Below, one piece after another: positions 3,578 to 48,933 of a DNA stretch of 64,000 nucleotides. Numbering within the stretch: the stretch's first letter is position 1; each line of letters opens with the position of its first letter. The DNA lies in the IMG/VR virus record IMGVR_UViG_3300042473_001540, positions 245,757 through 309,756 of that record. One strand, given 5' to 3'. The position numbers and the translations under genes were made by a program. The notes under the pieces were generated by a model. It was not told the DNA's origin, made no database searches, and saw nothing but the letters and a program-made list of their open reading frames with translations.

Positions 3578-4405
3578 CTAGCCCAGCTGGCCCAGGCTGG
3601 TGACAAATCCCGGGCGCCCGGGCTGGTTGTGCAGGATGAACTCGCTTTGTCCTGCACGATCGGTTATCCAGATGATGCTGTTAACAGGTATGTCAGCTTG
3701 CAGGACTTTCTCAAGCTTGCGGTCTCTCTTTTGCAACAGCTCAGTGATCCAAGTTTGGTCTTCTCGGAACTGCTCCTCTAAATCGTCCCCATCAGTTATC
3801 ATGTCACCATCGCTGTCAAAGATGTGATAATAATAAGGGTCTAGGTCAGGGTCATTGGTGGGCTCATCAGTGCGCACATATTGTTTCCCTCTCCAAGTGA
3901 CTTTGCCCTTTTGGTTATACTCTTGCACTGCTTGTTGAATAGCCTGATCAGTTATGGGCTTGACCTTCATGAGCCTGGGATCTACTCCTGCAAACCAAGC
4001 TGCAACGCGGGGGTCACTTGTCCAGCTGAGTGTGTGCCGGGGACCACCTTTGTCACCCACAGGGGTTTGAGCTCGATAGAGACGTATGGTGTCGCCAAAC
4101 TTCCTCCGCAAGGCCGCTTGCACTGGCCTAAAACTCTGCTCCAGGCTGGCTCGGATCCGTTGGCCCCGCTCACTTGGCTGTGGGCTGTAGGCATCTTCCA
4201 GTTGAGCACTTTTCATGATTCCGCCCCACATGCCCTTGTTTTGGGCATCCGGTGGCACTCCTACAAATCCCTCTAGGGCATCAGCAGCCTCTCCGGTCAA
4301 ACTGTCATCAGCTTGGTCCACTAGATTTTTGATGCCCAACTGCTCAACGCTGATGTTGGAGAAGCTTTCCCGTAGGATCCGGGGATTGAGATCTGTTATA
4401 CGCAT
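3578..4405 (-). CDS. putative ADP-ribosyltransferase, late expressed, candidate virion-packaged
   Basis: R-S-E ART triad (IRLYRAQ, LSWTSD, QSEFIL); TAAATA at 4410-4415 just upstream; N-terminus MRITDL..ILRE. Confidence 0.65.
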   Translation of the reverse strand: MRITDLNPRILRESFSNISVEQLGIKNLVDQADDSLTGEAADALEGFVGVPPDAQNKGMWGGIMKSAQLEDAYSPQPSERGQRIRASLEQSFRPVQAALRRKFGDTIRLYRAQTPVGDKGGPRHTLSWTSDPRVAAWFAGVDPRLMKVKPITDQAIQQAVQEYNQKGKVTWRGKQYVRTDEPTNDPDLDPYYYHIFDSDGDMITDGDDLEEQFREDQTWITELLQKRDRKLEKVLQADIPVNSIIWITDRAGQSEFILHNQPGRPGFVTSLGQLG

Positions 4406-39280: not shown

Positions 39281-39352
39281 GCAATTCTTTCCTCAAAAAT
39301 ATTAGCCAAATATTTATGTGCTGGAAACCAGCTGGAATCTAAATACTAGATC

Positions 39353-40186
39353 ATGAAACAGTTTGAACTCTCCCCACAATTAGTTTTTGAAGGCGGCAAC
39401 GTATTCAAAACCTCAGATGGCTATCCACGCACCACTCGTATCCCACTGGCTTTGATCAGTCCCACGTTGGATTGGCTGGAAAAAATCACAGGGCTGCCTA
39501 TGCATGGCATGACCTTGGGCAGTGTTGGCAAAAAAGCCAGCAGTGGGGATATCGACATTGTAGTCGACAGCAAGAAAATGTCAAAAGCCCAATTTGCCCA
39601 AAGTCTCCAAAACTGGGTGTTGAGCCAAGGTTTGAACCCCAAAGAGTATGTGAAGCCTGCTGGAGAAGTTCATCTGTTGACACCAATTGCAGGTGATCCC
39701 AAGAATGGCTTCGTGCAAACTGACTTTTTCTTCCATGATGATCCTCAATGGATGAAATTCAGCATGCAGAGTCCAGGAGACGCCAGCAACTACACTGGTG
39801 CAGAAAGAAATCAACTCATGAGCAGTATTGCCAAAGCATTGGGAATGAAATACAGTTGGCAACGTGGACTGTTGAATCGGGAAGATGAATCTGTTATCTC
39901 CACTGATCCTGATGTGATTGCACAAAAGCTATTGGGGCCCAGATTCACTCACGACAGCTTCCAAAGTGTTGAAACTATTCAACGAGCCATCAAAGGCAAT
40001 AGGGCTATTCATCAAGGGTTGACTGAGTTGATTCAAACTCTAAGGAGCTTGGATAAATTAGGGCCCACTGGCAAACCCACAATGGATGTGAAAACTGGGA
40101 AGTTTAAGCAGAAATCTCCCAGTGAGCAACGCAAATCAGAAGAAGAAGCTGCAAGGATTGAGCAGTTGACAGGTGTAGCTGTTTAG
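39353..40186 (+). CDS. Pol-beta superfamily nucleotidyltransferase, candidate virion-packaged
   Basis: LGSVGKKASSGDIDIVVD (GS..DxD) and VQTDF; TAAATA 39340-39345. Confidence 0.75.
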   Translation: MKQFELSPQLVFEGGNVFKTSDGYPRTTRIPLALISPTLDWLEKITGLPMHGMTLGSVGKKASSGDIDIVVDSKKMSKAQFAQSLQNWVLSQGLNPKEYVKPAGEVHLLTPIAGDPKNGFVQTDFFFHDDPQWMKFSMQSPGDASNYTGAERNQLMSSIAKALGMKYSWQRGLLNREDESVISTDPDVIAQKLLGPRFTHDSFQSVETIQRAIKGNRAIHQGLTELIQTLRSLDKLGPTGKPTMDVKTGKFKQKSPSEQRKSEEEAARIEQLTGVAV

Positions 40187-42402
40187 CTTTTGTTTCCGTA
40201 TCGGGGATCAATTGGCTTGACATGAATCTGATCAAACAGCAGAGGAAAGTTGGGCAAAACTTTTGGTAGGTCTGTTCTCTCCAACCAATTGTAATTTACG
40301 CTGCTGTGTGGAATGAAGTTGGGGAAATCGTGAGTTCCGCCCTTGCTCTTCAAATGATGATGAAATTTGTGTGCCAGGTCACAATCTAGGTCTAGGCACA
40401 GGGCTTTGTCGCCCATTTTGGTCCAACCTTTTATTTGTGCTGGCACAACCACAGTGTTACCATGCATGCTCATGAGGTGAGGCACTGGTTTTTGGCTATA
40501 CAAAACAGTCATGTGAAGATCATCAGTATTCATACAGGGAACACCTTGACTTTCACACCATTCTTTGAGCTCTCGAGCATTTTTGGGACTCATGCTCAAA
40601 ACAACTATGGTGCCAGCAGCGTGCTCATGAGCTTCCATTACTGTGTTCCTAGGGTGCTTGAGATAGCGTCGAACTGATTGGAACAGCCTATTGGAAAGTT
40701 CATCATCCAAACCCACAGCTTGGTGGAAAGCCTTTTTGTCTTTGTTCAAAACAGCCTCACGTGCCTTGGTGCCGCTTATTCCACTAACGCCAATGCCATC
40801 TGGATGCCGTTCTCCAGCTGATACAATTTCAATCGTCACTGGTTGACGTTGATGTTTTTCACGTATTTCTGGACTGTTCCAAGAGTCAAAAAGGTCTTTC
40901 ATGCCCTGCACACGATCTTCGCCGGCAACAAATACAAAATGTCTATAGCCTTTGTTGTAGAGCCATTCTGCGGCTTGCAGCGGAGTTTTGATGCTCTCAT
41001 CCTGCACCACATGATCTTGGTGTTGAGACATAATCTCTTGGAAAAACTCCAGCTTTTCCGCCCAAGGCAATGGATTCTTTTTTCCGTCTTGACTGTGACT
41101 CAAAAAGATCCAATAGTCACCCTTGCCAGCGTGTTTGGCCATTGTGTTAACCAAGTGCTGATGACCACGAGTGGGAGGATTCATCCTCCCAAAGGTCCAA
41201 ACTACCCGGTTGTGTTCTTGTTCCATCAATGAATCAGGCTCGCCTTTTCTCATAAATTGGGCACGATTTACAAACTTCACTATTCCAGTGGGAGTTACAG
41301 CCACAAATCCCTCATGTCCTGGATCTCCACCCAAACTAGCACCCACTGTCCCATCTGTTTGACGGTCCATTTGTTTCTTGAGATCCAGCTTCAAACTTGT
41401 TAACAAACTTACTATCCGCCACACGCTATTGTAACCATGGATGTGGCTTTGAATCCATTTCAAACACTTGGCCTGCATTGCAGGGCTAGCAGTACTGTTG
41501 AGCCCTGTAAGCCACTCCAAAAACTCTCTACTCACATGGCTAAATGTGGAACTACCACGTTCTGCCTTTTTGGCCAAAAAGCTTTTCATCAAGCCAGGAA
41601 GGCTCAAGATTTCATGACTGGCTAGTTGTCCTCTGTCCAAAAATGATTTCACACTTACAGCATGCACTCTAAACAAGTGGGATAATTTGTCAACTAAGTT
41701 TTTATCCAGGTTCAAACTTTTGAGCATGGTGGCTTCATGAGGTAGGATAGCCAGTCCTTGATCAGTGCGAAAGCCATATTGACTAATGTTTCGCAAGGCT
41801 TCTGGTTCCTGATCTTCAGGGCTTTGATAAACACTGTGCATGACCACGCCAGCACTGCTGTTGGCAATCATTTCACCATATTGACTGTTGACAGGCACAC
41901 GATAAGTTATTTTGTTGGGTGTAAATTCATATGCCCCATCTACAATGGGAGGTACACCAGTCCACAACAAATCCGCTTGAACGTAACCGATAAATCCTTT
42001 TGGGGTAACTTTTTTCAACAATGGGTAGAGACTGGCTATTTTGTTGGCATATGCCAGTCGAGCACTCTTTGCACTGGGGCTGGTGTCTTTCATTTTCCTG
42101 CTCATGAGCATATTGACAATATCCTCAGGGCTTGTGGTTAAACCATTGTATTTTTTACTGCTGAATCCAGCTTTGTCTGTTAACACAAATTTATAGTCTT
42201 TCCATCCAGAAATCAAGGCTGGTGTTCCATCCATTTTTATACTAACATACTCGGGTTGATGAGCAGTTGTGCTCAGTATATGAAAAGCTCTTTTGGCACC
42301 ATCTAACCCCTCATCGAAGATCATGTCTTCTGGATGCTCGATACGGGCTTTGGCCTCAGTCAAAGAGAGATTTACTACTGGTAATAAGTCAAACAGCTTC
42401 AT
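40183..42402 (-). CDS. three-domain protein: unknown N-domain, HIGH-type cytidylyltransferase-like domain, Acb1-like 2H phosphoesterase
   Basis: FGRMNPPTRGH (HIGH-like), VAGEDR; LHMTVLYS and FIPHSSVNY (two HxT/S motifs); TAAATA on minus at 42442-42447. Confidence 0.75.
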   Translation of the reverse strand: MKLFDLLPVVNLSLTEAKARIEHPEDMIFDEGLDGAKRAFHILSTTAHQPEYVSIKMDGTPALISGWKDYKFVLTDKAGFSSKKYNGLTTSPEDIVNMLMSRKMKDTSPSAKSARLAYANKIASLYPLLKKVTPKGFIGYVQADLLWTGVPPIVDGAYEFTPNKITYRVPVNSQYGEMIANSSAGVVMHSVYQSPEDQEPEALRNISQYGFRTDQGLAILPHEATMLKSLNLDKNLVDKLSHLFRVHAVSVKSFLDRGQLASHEILSLPGLMKSFLAKKAERGSSTFSHVSREFLEWLTGLNSTASPAMQAKCLKWIQSHIHGYNSVWRIVSLLTSLKLDLKKQMDRQTDGTVGASLGGDPGHEGFVAVTPTGIVKFVNRAQFMRKGEPDSLMEQEHNRVVWTFGRMNPPTRGHQHLVNTMAKHAGKGDYWIFLSHSQDGKKNPLPWAEKLEFFQEIMSQHQDHVVQDESIKTPLQAAEWLYNKGYRHFVFVAGEDRVQGMKDLFDSWNSPEIREKHQRQPVTIEIVSAGERHPDGIGVSGISGTKAREAVLNKDKKAFHQAVGLDDELSNRLFQSVRRYLKHPRNTVMEAHEHAAGTIVVLSMSPKNARELKEWCESQGVPCMNTDDLHMTVLYSQKPVPHLMSMHGNTVVVPAQIKGWTKMGDKALCLDLDCDLAHKFHHHLKSKGGTHDFPNFIPHSSVNYNWLERTDLPKVLPNFPLLFDQIHVKPIDPRYGNKS

Positions 42403-42522
42403 TGTTACGCCCCAACATAATCTTTTGGCAATCTATTGAATTATTTAACAGATCAAGGCGTCCATTTTGACTTCTTCTGTAACCAATTACAAAATTTAGG
42501 GTTTCAAACACAAAGGACTATA

Positions 42523-43368
42523 ATGGCATTGGTTCCCAAGATCAAATATCTAACAAACAAAGATTTATTGTCTGCAATCCATGAAAGTAAGCTTACTTTT
42601 TGTGAATTTGTTGACAAAAAATACACTGATTTTGATGTCATTGTATATGATCTTGCAGCAGCAACTCCAGAAGTTTTGGACGCTGCTCGACACAAAAAGC
42701 TAGCTAACAAAATGGCTGAAGAAAAGAAAGCCAGCGGCAGCAAGACTTTTGAATCTTCATTAACATTGGATAATGTGCCTTTGGATGAAATTGTTGTGAG
42801 GCTTATGACTTTTGTGCACATTCCGTTAAACCCTGCCAAAGCTGACAAAGCCAAAAATCAGGCAGAAAAACACATCAGATGCAATTTCCCTCCTTTTCAA
42901 CATTGGATTTTCCAAAACAATGAATGGAAATGTGTGGGCAAGAGTCATCACAAAAAGGGTGAATTCACCTTAACTGGCGGTAGGATTACTGATAGACTGG
43001 CTGCTATGTGGATCAAATTGGTTGATCGCTATGGGCATAGAGGCAACTGGAGAGGTTACACTTATCTTGACGAAATGAAAGCGCAAGCACTGGTGCAATT
43101 GGCACAAGTGGGACTTCAATTTGATGAAGCTAAAAGCTCAAACCCCTTTGCTTATTATACTACCGTAAGTAGTACAAGTTTTCTCAAGATATTACAACTG
43201 GAAAAGAGAAGTCAACACATAAGAGATGATCTTTTGATCATGCATGGTGCAACACCCAGTCACACCCGACAGACCGAGGATCAGTTGGCACAACAACTGG
43301 GATTTGACAATGCAGAAGCAGCAGTCCCACTTGTTGTGCCCCAAATGAGCCCAACTGGCCCCATCTAG
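42523..43368 (+). CDS. gp55: late-transcription sigma factor
   Basis: YLTNKDLL; NWRGYTYLDEMKAQAL; FDEAKSSNPFAYYT. Confidence 0.85.
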   Translation: MALVPKIKYLTNKDLLSAIHESKLTFCEFVDKKYTDFDVIVYDLAAATPEVLDAARHKKLANKMAEEKKASGSKTFESSLTLDNVPLDEIVVRLMTFVHIPLNPAKADKAKNQAEKHIRCNFPPFQHWIFQNNEWKCVGKSHHKKGEFTLTGGRITDRLAAMWIKLVDRYGHRGNWRGYTYLDEMKAQALVQLAQVGLQFDEAKSSNPFAYYTTVSSTSFLKILQLEKRSQHIRDDLLIMHGATPSHTRQTEDQLAQQLGFDNAEAAVPLVVPQMSPTGPI

Positions 43369-45086
43369 TATTTTTTGATCCACACTGCGTTGCCTGCATC
43401 ATAAAAACGATTGTAGCCCAAATTTTTGGCAATTTCTTGCTCTGTATTGCCCGCAGCTAAGCCTTGTATTTTGTGTTTTTGAAATTTAAGTCGGCTCTGA
43501 ACGTCATTTATATTTTTCCAATACCAATAATTGGGTGGACTGATATGACTTAACTCAAAGCCTGTTTTTTCGTAACCATTTCCCAGTCCCCAGTTCAAGT
43601 TACTGTAGGACACCAAGCTTTTGAATCCCAACTCCTGATGTGCATGATTCAAAAGCTTGCTAAGCCCTCCTGGCACATGATACCCAGGCAAAATACAATA
43701 ACGGGCCAGCTCATAATCACTCCCTTTGCTATACCTAGTTTTGACAAAGCTAGCAAGTGCAACAAGCGACCCGTTGTGTTCCAAACCCCAAATATGTTTG
43801 GTTGGTATGTTGCCCTGCAAGTGTGAGTTCTGAATAAATGTTTTAGCTGTTCCAAAATCCACAACTGTAATGTTGCATTTACGTGCACCAACAATTGTTT
43901 TTTTCAAACCCACTACGTGTGACAATCTGTCAAATATAATATTGGGTTTTTGCACCATCTCATGTTCCCAAATTTGAACAAGCCTTACACCTTTTTCAAG
44001 AGCTTGTTTCCATTTATTTTGATGATATTTTTTGTCTCCTATTTGGCAATCTGAATGATAAAAGATGCCATTAAACTCAATACCCACATTTAAATCTGGA
44101 AGATAAAAGTCAATCTCCAATGGCTTGATAACTTGCCTATTCCATTGCTCAAAAGATATGTTATTATCCCACAACCATTGTTTGATCTTTGTTTCTCCCC
44201 AACTTTCTTTTCTTGGATAACAAGCAAAACAACGCAAATCAGATTCTCTTTTCAAGGCAACACTGAATTGGTTATGGCATTTTTGGCAAACAAACGAATG
44301 TTCAGAATAACGATGTGAGTCCAAAAATTCTTCTTGAGTGAATAACGGAGTGTAATCAGTCCTATTTGTAATATAGGAATCCCAAGATTTTTGCCGAAAA
44401 GTTTTCCTATTGGTCTCCCTATGCTCTGTTGTCAAAAACGGGGCCACAACACCATATTTTGAGAGGTTGGTTTTTTTGGTTTTAACTAACACCTCCAGGT
44501 TTTGAGCAGGAACAGGTGCTCCATAAGTGTTTTGAAACACCTCTATAGTTTTGGTTCTTATATCAGGATGTTGCTGAGGAAAGTTTACTCCCCAATTTTC
44601 CTGGATCGTTTTTTGTGCTTTGTCTAAAACAACAGGATTTAAGGTTGGAGCTTTTGCGCCATACTTTTCAAAACATGTGGTCTCAGCTTTGGCTTTGACC
44701 TTGTCATGTTGACTTGCATACTCAAAACCATACTTTTGAAGGTTGGTATTTTTACGTTTTTCGTGAATATGATTTATTTCATCTCTAGTGCGGCTGTGTC
44801 GAACGCTTTCCTGATATTCACGATTACAGGAGCATTGAGATTGATTACCACAGAATTTTCTGAACCCTAGAACCATATTATTGAAAGTCCTGAACTTACC
44901 ACTCTGTTCACACCAACTGTTTTCTGCATTAGTGTTATGAACGTATGCATAAAATTTAGCTGCAATTGGGCCTTCACAAGGAAATAATTTGTCTAGCTCT
45001 TCTTTGTGTATAGGCAACAACTTTGTCAACCTATTTGGTGTAATCTCCTTGTTCAACCAAAGTTCTTTCAATTCTGCCAAATTCAC
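43365..45086 (-). CDS. Hef-like homing endonuclease (KYG repeats, Zn ribbon, PD-(D/E)xK nuclease, GNAT-like C-domain)
   Basis: Repeated T(C/N)L.KYG units; CQKC/CFAC; LEIDFYLPDLNVGIEFNG; ARKC..YELARYC..GGLSKL; TATAAATA on minus at 45113-45120. Confidence 0.75.
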   Translation of the reverse strand: MNLAELKELWLNKEITPNRLTKLLPIHKEELDKLFPCEGPIAAKFYAYVHNTNAENSWCEQSGKFRTFNNMVLGFRKFCGNQSQCSCNREYQESVRHSRTRDEINHIHEKRKNTNLQKYGFEYASQHDKVKAKAETTCFEKYGAKAPTLNPVVLDKAQKTIQENWGVNFPQQHPDIRTKTIEVFQNTYGAPVPAQNLEVLVKTKKTNLSKYGVVAPFLTTEHRETNRKTFRQKSWDSYITNRTDYTPLFTQEEFLDSHRYSEHSFVCQKCHNQFSVALKRESDLRCFACYPRKESWGETKIKQWLWDNNISFEQWNRQVIKPLEIDFYLPDLNVGIEFNGIFYHSDCQIGDKKYHQNKWKQALEKGVRLVQIWEHEMVQKPNIIFDRLSHVVGLKKTIVGARKCNITVVDFGTAKTFIQNSHLQGNIPTKHIWGLEHNGSLVALASFVKTRYSKGSDYELARYCILPGYHVPGGLSKLLNHAHQELGFKSLVSYSNLNWGLGNGYEKTGFELSHISPPNYWYWKNINDVQSRLKFQKHKIQGLAAGNTEQEIAKNLGYNRFYDAGNAVWIKKY

Positions 45087-46245: not shown

Positions 46246-48023
46246 ACTTGATCATCCTCAAAAACGTCACAATCAAAAACTTCATGAGTGTGGGTGCTGT
46301 TACACAATCAGTTACTCTCACACAACCTGGCTTGACTCTTGTATTGGGCGAGAATCTAGACTTGGGCGGCAACGGCAACCGGAATGGTGTTGGCAAATCG
46401 ACGCTGATTTCAGCCATTTGTTATGCCCTGTATGGTCAAGCTCTTACTAACATCAAGAAAAACAATCTCATCAACAGCATCAACAAAAAGAACATGGTGG
46501 TGAGTATTGAGTTTGAAGCCCACGGCAACAGCTACAAAATTGAACGTGGCCGTGCCCCTAGTTTTTTCCGCTATGTTGTAAATGATGAATCAGTAAATGA
46601 AAACAAAAGTGCAGACGAAGCTCAAGGCGAAAACAAAGATACTCAGAAAGAGATTGAGAAGGTATTGGGCATCAGCCACACCATGTTCAAACACATTGTG
46701 GCTTTGAACACCTATACTGAGCCATTTTTGAGCATGGGTGCTGGAAAACAGCGAGAAATAATTGAAGAGCTGTTGGGAATTACATTACTGTCTCAGAAGG
46801 CAGAAAACCTCAAAAAGCTTATTCAAACAACCAAACAAACTATTGAACAAGAAGAGTTCAAAATACATACTATCAAAAACAGCAATACACGTATTTTGAG
46901 CACTATTGAAAGTTTGAATCAAAAAACCCAACAGTGGGATACTCAACATCAGAACAAAATTCAAGACTTGGAAAATGCACTAGATGCTTTGAGTCATCTT
47001 GATGTTGAGCAGGAAATTCAAAGTCACAAAGACAATCTTGTGTATCGTGAACTTCAAACAGCATTGAAGAATGTGCGCAGCCAAAGCCAAACAAAAACAC
47101 AGCATGGAACACAGCTGAAGGCGCAACAAAACAACTGGTTAACTCAGTATAGTCAAATTCAAGACCACAACTGCGCAATGTGTGGTCAAAAGATTCATGA
47201 CGAGAAACAAACACATCTGCTGGACGACCTTGAGCACAAAATTACCAAACTGGACAGCAGCATTCAAACACTGGAACAGGAATGCCTGAGTTTGACACAA
47301 GAACTGGATGAGCTCATGGGTCTGTCTAGTGCTGTATCGCTAAACCAAACATTTTACAAAAGCATTGATGAGGCATATGAGCATCGAAACAGTCTCACAC
47401 TTCTTAGTGGTGAACTGGACAAACTTAAGCTTGAAACCAATCCTTATCAAGCCCAAGTGGGTAATTTAAATGACACACTGCAAGAAGTCACTTATGATTC
47501 ACTAAATGAACTCAGCCAACTCAAAGACCATCAAGAGTTTCTCTTGAAGCTGCTAACAAACAAAGACAGCTTCATCCGAAAGCGTATTATTGATCAAAAC
47601 CTCAGCTACTTGAATCACAGACTGGGTGAATATCTAGCTGGATTGATGTTGCCACACCAAGTTAAATTCAGCAACGACTTGGGAGTTGAGATCATGCATA
47701 TGGGCGTAGACTTTGACTTTGACAGTCTCAGCCGAGGTGAACGCACAAGAGTTTGTTTGGCACTCAGCTGGGCATTCCGAGACATTTTTGAAAACATGAA
47801 CACCAGCATCAACTTCATGGCTGTTGATGAGATCCTTGATGTGGGACTTGACAGCACAGGACTTGAAAGATCTCTAGAGACGCTTAAGGCTATGAGCAGA
47901 GATCGGAACAAGAACATTTTGTTGATCTCACATAGAGAAGAGCTAACAAGTCGCTGCGATCGAGTTTTGTATGTTATCAAAGAGTTAGGTTTCACTCGTT
48001 TCAGCTATGAAAGCGGTGAGTAA
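46242..48023 (+). CDS. gp46: recombination ATPase subunit (Rad50/SbcC-like)
   Basis: NGVGKST Walker A, CAMC zinc hook, LSRGE signature, AVDEILD Walker B, ISH. Confidence 0.93.
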   Translation: MNLIILKNVTIKNFMSVGAVTQSVTLTQPGLTLVLGENLDLGGNGNRNGVGKSTLISAICYALYGQALTNIKKNNLINSINKKNMVVSIEFEAHGNSYKIERGRAPSFFRYVVNDESVNENKSADEAQGENKDTQKEIEKVLGISHTMFKHIVALNTYTEPFLSMGAGKQREIIEELLGITLLSQKAENLKKLIQTTKQTIEQEEFKIHTIKNSNTRILSTIESLNQKTQQWDTQHQNKIQDLENALDALSHLDVEQEIQSHKDNLVYRELQTALKNVRSQSQTKTQHGTQLKAQQNNWLTQYSQIQDHNCAMCGQKIHDEKQTHLLDDLEHKITKLDSSIQTLEQECLSLTQELDELMGLSSAVSLNQTFYKSIDEAYEHRNSLTLLSGELDKLKLETNPYQAQVGNLNDTLQEVTYDSLNELSQLKDHQEFLLKLLTNKDSFIRKRIIDQNLSYLNHRLGEYLAGLMLPHQVKFSNDLGVEIMHMGVDFDFDSLSRGERTRVCLALSWAFRDIFENMNTSINFMAVDEILDVGLDSTGLERSLETLKAMSRDRNKNILLISHREELTSRCDRVLYVIKELGFTRFSYESGE

Positions 48024-48052
48024 TTATCTGTACTCCATAAATATAGATATAT

Positions 48053-48082
48053 GCCGGTCACGACCCTGGCAGGTCCACCGGC
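48053..48082 (+). promoter_or_regulatory. leader hairpin between late promoter (TAAATA 48038-48043) and homing endonuclease RBS
   Basis: GCCGGT/ACCGGC outer and GACC/GGTC inner stems. Confidence 0.55.
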
Positions 48083-48108
48083 TCTATCGCTTTAAGGGAG
48101 CAACAGCT

Positions 48109-48933
48109 ATGTCTATTTATCGTAATATCAAACCCTTTGGGTTTTATGTGTATGCCTACTTAAGAAAAACAACATCCAACAATGGTCCTGCAGGAACCCC
48201 TTATTATATTGGAAAAGGGACCGGCATACGTTACAAAGAAAACCACGGAACTCTACCTGTACCAAAAGAAGCATGGAGGATTGTTGTCCTTGAACAAGGA
48301 TTAACTAATCTTGGTGCTGTTGCGCTCGAAAGAAGGCTGATACTCTGGTGGGGACGCCTGGATAATAACACAGGTATATTACACAATCGAACTGATGGCG
48401 GGGATGGGGCAGTTGGGAAGATAGTCTCTGATGAATCAAGAATGAAAGCAAGTGTTAACAATTGTGGCAAAAAAAGAAGTGCAGAAACAATCAAGAACAT
48501 AAAAGATGCATTATCTCTTATCGACAGGTCAGGAGAGAATCATCCGTTATATGGCAAAAAGCATTCTGATGAAGCTAGATCTAAAATGAGCGAAGCTAAA
48601 AAAGGCAGGTCCTATGAAGAAATTTATGGCCCAAAAGCAGAAGAGATGCGAGCTGCACGCTCACAAAAATCTCGGGGACGAAGTCTGTCTGCTGAGACCA
48701 AAGAAAAGATAAGTTTAGCAAATCGAGGCAAGAAAAAACCTGCAGGCTTTGGAGTCCGAATGTCCGCAGTAAGGTCTGGCCAAAAAGTCTCTGAAGAAAT
48801 TTTGAAGAAGAGAGCACAGATATTCGAAGCAACAAAACAAACTTGTGAACATTGCGGGAATATCTTTGGTTTAGCGAACTATATCAGATGGCATGGTCCT
48901 AATTGCAAAACTCAACCTAACCAACTACTATAG
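48109..48933 (+). CDS. GIY-YIG homing endonuclease with NUMOD3 repeats
   Basis: FYVYAY..YYIGKG..RY; N.TDGGDG; HPLYGKKHSDE.R.KMSEAKKG. Confidence 0.9.
   Translation: MSIYRNIKPFGFYVYAYLRKTTSNNGPAGTPYYIGKGTGIRYKENHGTLPVPKEAWRIVVLEQGLTNLGAVALERRLILWWGRLDNNTGILHNRTDGGDGAVGKIVSDESRMKASVNNCGKKRSAETIKNIKDALSLIDRSGENHPLYGKKHSDEARSKMSEAKKGRSYEEIYGPKAEEMRAARSQKSRGRSLSAETKEKISLANRGKKKPAGFGVRMSAVRSGQKVSEEILKKRAQIFEATKQTCEHCGNIFGLANYIRWHGPNCKTQPNQLL

Follow-up and report, generated by a model that had tools for sequence, protein, structure and literature searches.

A jumbo-phage protein combining a ligase-like domain, a HIGH nucleotidyltransferase and an Acb1-type phosphodiesterase as a candidate capsid-targeted, site-punctuated enzyme precursor

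The internal proteins of phage T4 bear a capsid-targeting sequence (CTS), MKTYQEFIAE, and are cut once only, beside that sequence (PMC8442874); the head protease gp21 cleaves after L/I-x-E, with CTS residues 4 and 7 serving targeting and residues 8 and 10 serving processing (PMC9026906). Multi-domain polyvalent proteins injected by phages and conjugative elements have been described by Iyer et al. 2017 (as cited in PMC7824862), and in phage RNA repair the RNA ligases have Pol-beta nucleotidyltransferases (RlaP) as partners and 2H enzymes for removing cyclic ends (PMC7824862). Acb1, a 2H phosphoesterase with a described HxT/HxT catalytic tetrad, has as its known job the destruction of signals of the cyclic-oligonucleotide-based anti-phage signalling system (CBASS), and the activity of the T4 enzyme was assayed in infected-cell lysates (PMC9117128). 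Here we present a gene, P0001, that appears to combine pieces of these systems; it lies in a 64,000-nucleotide stretch of DNA (the window), the last 64 kb of the 309,756-bp IMG/VR virus record IMGVR_UViG_3300042473_001540, which CheckV estimates to be about 76% complete. On balance we lean towards the view that P0001 encodes a late-expressed, capsid-targeted multi-enzyme precursor, an enzymatic "internal protein" that would be packed, cut and injected.

P0001 occupies window positions 40183..42402 on the minus strand, stop codon included, and runs from an ATG start to a 739-residue product in which three Pfam domains, all above their curated cut-offs, follow one another: DUF6267 at residues 21-384 (E 2e-27), CTP_transf_like (PF01467) at residues 403-549 (E 7e-6 over the full protein and 6e-7 with the domain searched alone) and Acb1 (PF23474) at residues 597-733 (E 1e-18 and 4.5e-20, likewise). 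Among PHROGs it matches families 3041 and 395 ("cytidyltransferase"), 755 (2H) and 455, the last of which at 764 residues already unites DUF6267 with CTP_transf_like. The motifs FGRMNPPTRGH, LHMTV and PHSS stand at residues 404-414, 629-633 and 698-701. We regard these domain assignments as very secure, and the three-module anatomy that an earlier sequence-only reading had given this open reading frame (ORF) holds. That reading had also placed hydrophobic-x-Glu sites at the leader and at both domain junctions, and they are present as LSLTE/AK (E16), DSLME/QE (E394) and NTVME/AH (E590), the slash marking the proposed cut. On the minus strand the gene thus divides into a leader of residues 1-16 (MKLFDLL...LTE; 42355..42402), a proposed capsid-targeting propeptide ending L-T-E/A; module 1, the DUF6267 module of residues 17-394 (41221..42354; predicted 41.8 kDa, pI 9.2); module 2, the HIGH-superfamily nucleotidyltransferase of residues 395-590 (40633..41220; predicted 22.7 kDa); and module 3, the Acb1-family 2H phosphoesterase of residues 591-739 (40186..40632; predicted 16.8 kDa). 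The linker-1 site, L392-M-E394/Q395, lies at 41221..41229 and the linker-2 site, V588-M-E590/A591, at 40633..40641.

A bare hydrophobic-x-Glu tripeptide is weak evidence alone, and it is the context of these motifs that is informative. In a set of 38 homologs with 44-83% identity, and with expected counts derived from shuffles, [LIVM]xE is found in the leader of 37 (18 expected), in linker 1 of all 38 (10.2 expected) and in linker 2 of all 38 (9.5 expected), in linkers that vary in length and sequence; a leader ending L-x-E/A(K) is kept in 37 of the 38. P0001 holds five [LIVM]xE motifs in total, against 9.1 expected from its composition, and three of the five fall inside 34 low-confidence residues (hypergeometric p about 8e-4). 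In the full-length AlphaFold model (predicted local distance difference test, pLDDT, 83.6; predicted template-modelling score, pTM, 0.48) the low-confidence segments comprise only residues 1-3, 11-20, 388-397 and 584-591 and the last three residues, and the three site motifs lie there; pLDDT is below 50 at 388-397 and 584-591, and the leader is low in the full-length and the module models alike. The pTM of 0.48 indicates that the modules are, as modelled, independent domains. In longer homologs extra modules sit at the two linkers, and every boundary again carries a phi-x-E motif (phi, hydrophobic). Among the inserted modules of these longer homologs (P0035, P0014, P0028, P0011, P0013, P0017) are a ParB_N domain, a small basic module beginning KGRWALVS, an Ala/Gly-rich hydrophobic segment of ~200 residues and a conserved module of ~100 residues ahead of Acb1. 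Two other candidate roles for these segments were rejected: the leader as a signal peptide, given an acidic residue at position 5 and a weak hydrophobic core, and internal translation starts at M393 and M589, where Met is not conserved.

Leaders of the same style recur on related proteins. Stand-alone relatives of the HIGH nucleotidyltransferase have leaders of 8-11 residues ending in phi-x-E at 77 of 78 distinct cyanomyovirus N-termini, and comparable leaders (MRFIEFIRE/A and MKSFLDLLQE/D are examples from proteins that begin with this domain) are found in other architectures as well (P0109-P0117); the cyanophage counterpart of linker 1 is the N-terminal leader itself. Relatives of the convergent neighbour P0002, a Pol-beta-type nucleotidyltransferase-like gene described below, begin MK(L/Q)x(E/D)(L/F)...phi-x-E/GG, in the same style as P0001. 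By sequence, the P0001, P0002-relative and cyanophage nucleotidyltransferase leaders all seem to resemble the T4 CTS. The cytidylyltransferase, a homolog of module 2, was found by mass spectrometry in the virion proteome of cyanophage S-CREM2 (3 peptides), and the authors, who caution about contamination, state that the protein is often seen in cyanophage virions (PMC10665884).

The source is a T4-like jumbo myovirus, and candidate machinery for such processing is encoded in it. Searches of the window's own, incomplete record with PF03420 and PF07068 found no protease and no real major capsid protein; a 328,603-bp sister record (L034/G001) holding a 100% identical P0001 gene carries a Peptidase_S77 (gp21-type) protease (L086 1339..2061; E 3e-23) clustered with a coiled-coil ORF and a gp23-like capsid protein. 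We take the 401-residue coiled-coil ORF to be the scaffold, and an L-F-E/N in the N-terminal region of the gp23-like protein is, in our reading, the probable equivalent of the T4 propeptide cut. The S77 protease is also present on two further jumbo records with DUF6267 genes. The earlier proposal that P0001 is a precursor cut in the prohead is thus supported, at the level of comparison, by an S77 protease in the same phage, conserved linker motifs, CTS-like leaders and a homolog in virions.

Late expression is suggested by promoter-like motifs ahead of both genes. A T4-late-promoter-like TAAATAC (39340..39346, plus strand) stands 13 nt upstream of P0002, and a weaker motif of this kind, TTAAATAA (42441..42448, minus strand), stands 46 nt upstream of P0001. 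Across the genome TAAATA[TC] has 52 matches, 29 of which lie 8-70 nt upstream of same-strand starts against 2.1 expected; from its sequence and placement it looks like a relaxed form of the T4 late promoter, whose strict form, TATAAATA, occurs a single time in the window. The matches mostly precede structural genes, with window examples at 39340, 51990, 54383 and 56171 on the plus strand and 39316 and 51982 on the minus strand.

In the mechanism that we propose, the 16-residue CTS-like leader would draw P0001 into the prohead scaffolding core, where a gp21-type serine protease would remove it at E16/A17 and would also cut the flexible linkers at E394/Q395 and E590/A591; in T4 an Asp at P1 stops processing but leaves targeting intact. 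Three basic-to-neutral enzymes would be released: an Rnl1/Trl1-like ligase-fold adenylyltransferase (~42 kDa), a HIGH nucleotidyltransferase (~23 kDa) and an Acb1-type 2H phosphodiesterase (~17 kDa). Retained in the head, they would be carried into the cell together with the DNA, and the P0002 product, with the same leader type, would travel along. Once inside, the Acb1 module may cleave the 3'-5' bonds of cyclic di- and trinucleotide signals (CBASS, type III CRISPR) and/or open 2',3'-cyclic phosphate ends, and the ligase-like module, the Pol-beta-like enzyme and the HIGH nucleotidyltransferase may restore damaged RNA ends by healing and sealing, or else process nucleotide products. The analysis establishes which domains and catalytic motifs are present, how the sites are conserved and placed, that the phage has the protease gene, and how the genes are linked and fused; packaging, cleavage, injection and every substrate are what we infer.

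Several observations weigh against this scheme. Many architectures keep the stretch L-x-E-A-K-A-R-I-E-H-P-E-D where DUF6267 begins, so it may be partly structural; cyanophage DUF6267 lacks a leader and is absent from the S-CREM2 virion proteome table (PMC10665884); and the P3 residue of linker 2 is often Val or Met instead of Leu or Ile. Exposure to the protease might be expected to deplete phi-x-E in the folded domains, but a family-wide test returned a ratio of 1.01 and hence no depletion.

Foldseek led from module 3 to Acb1 (7t27), from module 2 to phosphopantetheine adenylyltransferase (PPAT), NadD and FMN adenylyltransferase (FMNAT), and from the N-terminal domain to weak matches only (E 0.04 or worse). 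For module 3 the hidden Markov model (HMM) of Acb1 scores 67.6 bits on the whole protein and 72.3 bits on the domain against a cut-off of 27, the family profile aligns to the FBB1 Acb1 structure 7t26 with E 4.5e-12 and both His motifs matched, and 7t27 and 7t26 are the top PDB matches of the AlphaFold model (E 9e-9, or about 1e-8; TM-score 0.67-0.68), followed by a Burkholderia phage Acb1-type phosphodiesterase, with LigT and cyclic phosphodiesterases clearly lower. The likeness to T4 Acb1 first noticed in LHMTVLYS and PHSS is therefore borne out by Pfam, by the 7t26 profile and by Foldseek. The first catalytic HxT/S motif, H630-M-T632 (40507..40515, minus strand), has an invariant His and a nearly invariant Thr aligned to the HxT of Acb1, and the second, H699-S-S701 (40300..40308, minus strand), an invariant His aligned to the corresponding Acb1 motif. 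In a hand alignment whose numbering offset is unsettled, W660, which is invariant, F696 and Y735 fall at or close to W74, F107 and W147, the aromatics that stack the bases in Acb1, and the position of the adenine-contacting E141, again by hand alignment, is Lys729 in P0001 and Glu in most homologs; Acb1 Y12 falls outside the HMM alignment with P0001. Acb1-like domains also occur on capsid proteins: the portal of Pam3 (PDB 8hds) bears one at its C-terminus, and P0118, a metagenomic protein of 1080 residues, is a portal-Acb1-ADP-ribosyltransferase exoenzyme fusion. 2H/Acb1 domains are thus built into the capsids of unrelated phages.

The N-terminal module, described at first as an unknown domain of ~390 residues, is indeed a distinct module, but its fold is not unknown: by its top 24 fold matches and by PF09511 it is ligase-like. 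Its model is of high confidence (pLDDT 89.9, pTM 0.84), the best 24 of 48,161 chains compared with it are all ATP-dependent RNA or DNA ligases, and ligases are also among the weak Foldseek matches in the PDB. Sub-threshold matches to PF09511 (Rnl1/Trl1 ligase) occur in 11 of the 38 homologs, the best at E 0.003, whereas each other outside family is matched by at most one of the 38; P0001 itself gives no match to PF09511, and the N-domain profile searched against PDB sequences found no ligase. K56-M-D-G59 (42226..42237, minus strand), putative ligase motif I with the putative adenylylated lysine, is invariant in the family alignment at K56, D58 and G59, and GHEGFV...IVKFVNR (residues 362-380; 41263..41319, minus strand), putative motifs IV and V, has invariant E364, G365, K376 and R380. 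With hhalign the HEGFV...K.V stretch aligns to EEGW...AKL of the phage's own Rnl1, in our reading that enzyme's ligase motifs IV/V, although weakly (E 0.18) and over the motif IV/V region only. A helical insert occupies about residues 222-350. Because of the fold matches, the sub-threshold PF09511 matches, the invariant motifs and an intein inside KxDG, we conclude that DUF6267 is, as modelled, probably a divergent Rnl1/Trl1-type ATP-dependent ligase-fold nucleotidyltransferase with a helical insert, an assignment of fold and motifs.

The intein interrupts the DUF6267 gene of four homologs (P0054, P0057, P0062, P0063) exactly after the KWDG of putative motif I, with borders at KWDG/CVHPD and LLIHN/SPA; one example is L096:4709-6060, in a relative on a 333-kb JGI contig. 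Inteins usually sit at sites such as a KxDG motif I. Gene callers split the intein-bearing genes, which gives these proteins a seemingly different N-terminus. Part of the helical insert (P0001 residues 217-300, window about 41503-41754) has a weak profile match, possibly by chance (E 0.03), to the C-terminal part of an archaeal L-seryl-tRNA(Sec) kinase (chain residues 167-251). DUF6267 numbers about 2,500 clusters at 50% identity; a literature search found no paper mentioning it, cluster look-ups returned no names, and most domains that accompany DUF6267 in large proteins have no assignment. The same phage has a separate, canonical Rnl1-type RNA ligase at G000:C1:210457-211674 (L097 1294-2511; PF09511 E 2e-27).

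The neighbour P0002 (39353..40186, plus strand) encodes 277 residues with a leader, MKQFELSPQLVFE/GG, at nt 39353-39391 on the same strand and a G-S...D-I-D motif of Pol-beta type; the tail-to-tail arrangement with a Pol-beta nucleotidyltransferase gene that had been noted from the sequence is confirmed. P0002 has no Pfam match at E up to 1, PF10127 (RlaP) included, and no PHROG match, and its ESM Atlas neighbours are viral hypothetical proteins, a few with NTP_transf_2 features. The TAA stop of P0001 and the TAG stop of P0002 overlap by 4 nt (TTAG, 40183-40186), so that neither a spacer nor a terminator separates the genes. In 33 of the 34 three-domain loci fetched a P0002 homolog is convergent and directly adjacent, and the 34th (L019) ends inside it. 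Proteins of a ~614-residue family carry a P0002-type domain N-terminal to DUF6267, and P0294 joins a P0002-type domain (41% identity, E 2e-44), DUF6267 and the HIGH nucleotidyltransferase in one polypeptide, whose C-terminal tail is not Acb1. Cyanomyoviruses encode DUF6267 and the cytidyltransferase side by side. Because of this conserved adjacency and these fusions, DUF6267, the HIGH nucleotidyltransferase, Acb1 and P0002 belong to one process.

As for what that process may be, the ensemble would, by analogy, be no less like a kit for healing and sealing RNA ends than like one for nucleotide metabolism, because the N-terminal domain is of Rnl1/Trl1-like ligase fold; a search for Tpt1 found no clear one in the phage. 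The strongest alternative to packaging grows out of this resemblance: P0001 would be an uncleaved, cytoplasmic, trifunctional Trl1-like RNA repair enzyme working with P0002, its phi-x-E motifs and leader serving, for example, docking or folding. The order and sizes of its domains match the ligase, kinase and cyclic phosphodiesterase (LIG-KIN-CPD) of Trl1, its N-domain is nearest to Rnl1/Trl1-type ligases, and single polypeptides with Pol-beta-like, DUF6267 and HIGH nucleotidyltransferase domains exist. A Foldseek alignment of 424 columns (E 5e-5) pairs it with entry 6u05 ("Crystal Structure of Fungal RNA Kinase", 413 residues), which we take to be the kinase-CPD part of Trl1. The middle domain, however, is not a kinase, and the phage already has a canonical Rnl1. 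Such an enzyme would also leave unexplained why phi-x-E is the sole conserved feature of variable, disordered linkers, why a CTS-like leader is common to unrelated enzymes and why the nucleotidyltransferase is found in virions. Although the known pairing of RNA ligases with Pol-beta nucleotidyltransferases and the clearing of cyclic ends by 2H enzymes fit it (PMC7824862), we hold this alternative to be doubtful.

We favour instead a delivered counter-defence kit in which Acb1 would act on cyclic oligonucleotides and/or cyclic phosphate ends and the other enzymes on RNA or oligonucleotide ends. A bolder version, which we think rather unlikely, would make DUF6267, the cyanomyovirus "cytidyltransferase", the Pol-beta-like nucleotidyltransferase and jumbo-phage Acb1 a CTS-tagged, head-packaged and injected set, delivered here as a polyprotein that the protease releases, with a new healing-and-sealing chemistry for RNA or oligonucleotide ends, in which a HIGH adenylyltransferase stands in for the Trl1-type kinase (it might, for instance, adenylylate a terminal phosphate) and Acb1 doubles as signal destroyer and end-healer.

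A delivered protein need not be cut throughout, and P0001 might be packaged with its leader alone removed, its domains staying joined and being injected as an 81-kDa polyvalent protein. The single cut of the T4 internal proteins (PMC8442874) is the precedent for this, L-T-E/A is the site closest to the T4 consensus, and injected multi-domain polyvalent proteins are already known (PMC7824862). We nevertheless consider it quite unlikely that cleavage stops at the leader: the internal motifs are conserved as strongly as that of the leader and stand in exposed, disordered linkers, inserted modules carry flanking motifs of their own, and in cyanophages the equivalent of linker 1 is an N-terminal leader.

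For the middle module, a HIGH-type nucleotidyltransferase had been recognised from FGRMNPPTRGH, and that identification is sound: its HMM scores of 26.7 (whole) and 30.2 bits exceed the PF01467 cut-off of 21, the motifs T-R-G-H at 411-414 ((T/H)xGH) and ISGTKAR at 542-548 (ISxTxxR) are conserved, and the fold is Rossmann-like. Its Foldseek matches are PPAT, NadD/NMN adenylyltransferase (NMNAT) and FMNAT about equally (E 2e-4 to 2e-3), with PPAT slightly ahead of NadD by target-normalised TM-score. Searched against the PDB, its profile gave weak, motif-level matches to MJ0951 and ATP sulfurylase only, and found no NMNAT there. Its look-alikes are all viral "cytidyltransferases", a virus-only clade; the phage "cytidyltransferase" numbers more than 5,000 clusters at 90% identity and is widespread in marine cyanomyoviruses. 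From sequence and model, the module is best described as a generic HIGH nucleotidyltransferase of the phage "cytidyltransferase" clade, about equally near PPAT, FMNAT and NMNAT. The NAD+/NMN role first suggested for it finds no specific support, and we consider it very unlikely that the module is an NMN or nicotinate mononucleotide (NaMN) adenylyltransferase in a protein serving NAD+ synthesis or salvage, since a weak phrog_3462 (NMN adenylyltransferase) match (E 0.004), homologs some of which JGI names NaMN adenylyltransferase and the NadD and NMNAT structures among the fold matches are countered by equally good PPAT and FMNAT matches, by a profile that finds no NMNAT, by the virus-only clade and by linked partners (ligase-like, Pol-beta-like, 2H) that point to nucleic-acid ends or oligonucleotides.

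Elsewhere in the window, the neighbours of P0001 include a gp55-type late sigma factor gene divergent from it, gp47/gp46-type SbcCD genes and a gp5-like hub-lysozyme, and further genes encode virion structural proteins, a portal protein and tail fibres. Three more ORFs begin with leaders of this style, at window 3581-4405 (minus strand; MRITDLNPRILRE/S), G000:C1:136828-137406 (minus strand; MKIQDLTQPLNE/S) and G000:C1:145499-146614 (plus strand; MRIYHLVPLKKLLE/A); by their leaders they are candidates for further capsid-targeted proteins, and Pfam and PHROG scans gave no function for them. The motif TAAATATC stands 15 nt upstream of the first, and an R-S-E pattern seen there by eye, which would make it an ADP-ribosyltransferase, is unsupported by Pfam and PHROGs. 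Homing-endonuclease genes (HNH/GIY-type PHROGs) lie at window 43365-45086 (minus strand), between gp55 and gp47, and at 48007-48933 (plus strand), after gp46; the sister record has another one beside its capsid gene (L088 2613-3467). G+C content is about 0.50-0.57 over window positions 1-30000 and falls to about 0.38-0.47 over 30000-64000, the part that holds structural genes and the P0001 locus.

The pieces of this picture, T4 CTS and gp21 processing, polyvalent injected proteins, Acb1 and Trl1-like architectures, are already known. What appears to be new, with nothing found in the literature searched, is the CTS-led, site-punctuated enzyme precursor that combines them, the ligase-fold assignment of DUF6267, and the CTS-like leaders on the phage cytidyltransferase family. 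If the proposed mechanism is right, an anti-CBASS phosphodiesterase and nucleic-acid repair enzymes would be pre-loaded in the head and active at DNA entry, before phage gene expression, and T4 capsid-targeting and gp21 processing would serve polyproteins of enzymes as well as small internal proteins. DUF6267 and the phage "cytidyltransferase", both large orphan families, would gain a concrete, testable function, and the natural leaders and cut sites could be used for packing foreign proteins into phage heads.

Set beside known systems, P0002 is like RlaP (PF10127) in being a Pol-beta-type nucleotidyltransferase coupled by adjacency and fusion to a ligase-fold enzyme, and unlike it in lacking a PF10127 or any other Pfam match. 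P0001 shares with Trl1 an N-terminal Rnl1-type ligase domain, a nucleotide-binding alpha/beta middle and a C-terminal 2H domain of similar sizes, the ligase likeness being sub-threshold in sequence; it differs in that its middle is a HIGH nucleotidyltransferase rather than a P-loop kinase and its 2H domain is of the Acb1 family rather than tRNA_lig_CPD. With Acb1 itself (T4 57B, Erwinia phage FBB1; PF23474) the C-terminal module shares membership by sequence and fold, the HxT/HxS tetrad and, as far as a hand alignment shows, aromatics at or near the stacking positions, including the C-terminal lid aromatic, but the known enzymes are small and stand alone, whereas this one, with Lys in place of E141 by hand alignment, is the last module of a probable virion precursor. 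Like the polyvalent proteins, P0001 is large and multi-domain, with predicted co-delivery with DNA, counter-defence and nucleotide-targeting enzymes and modules swapped between relatives; unlike them it has no peptidase domain of its own, and release would need the prohead protease and T4-type sites. The T4 internal proteins and Alt are matched in a short N-terminal leader ending L/I-x-E, a gp21-type S77 protease in the same phage, diverse cargoes behind a similar leader and a presumed role in early take-over or counter-defence. The leaders here are 13-16 residues rather than 10 and packaging is a prediction, and P0001, unlike its T4 counterparts, carries three consecutive enzymes separated by further conserved cut-site motifs.

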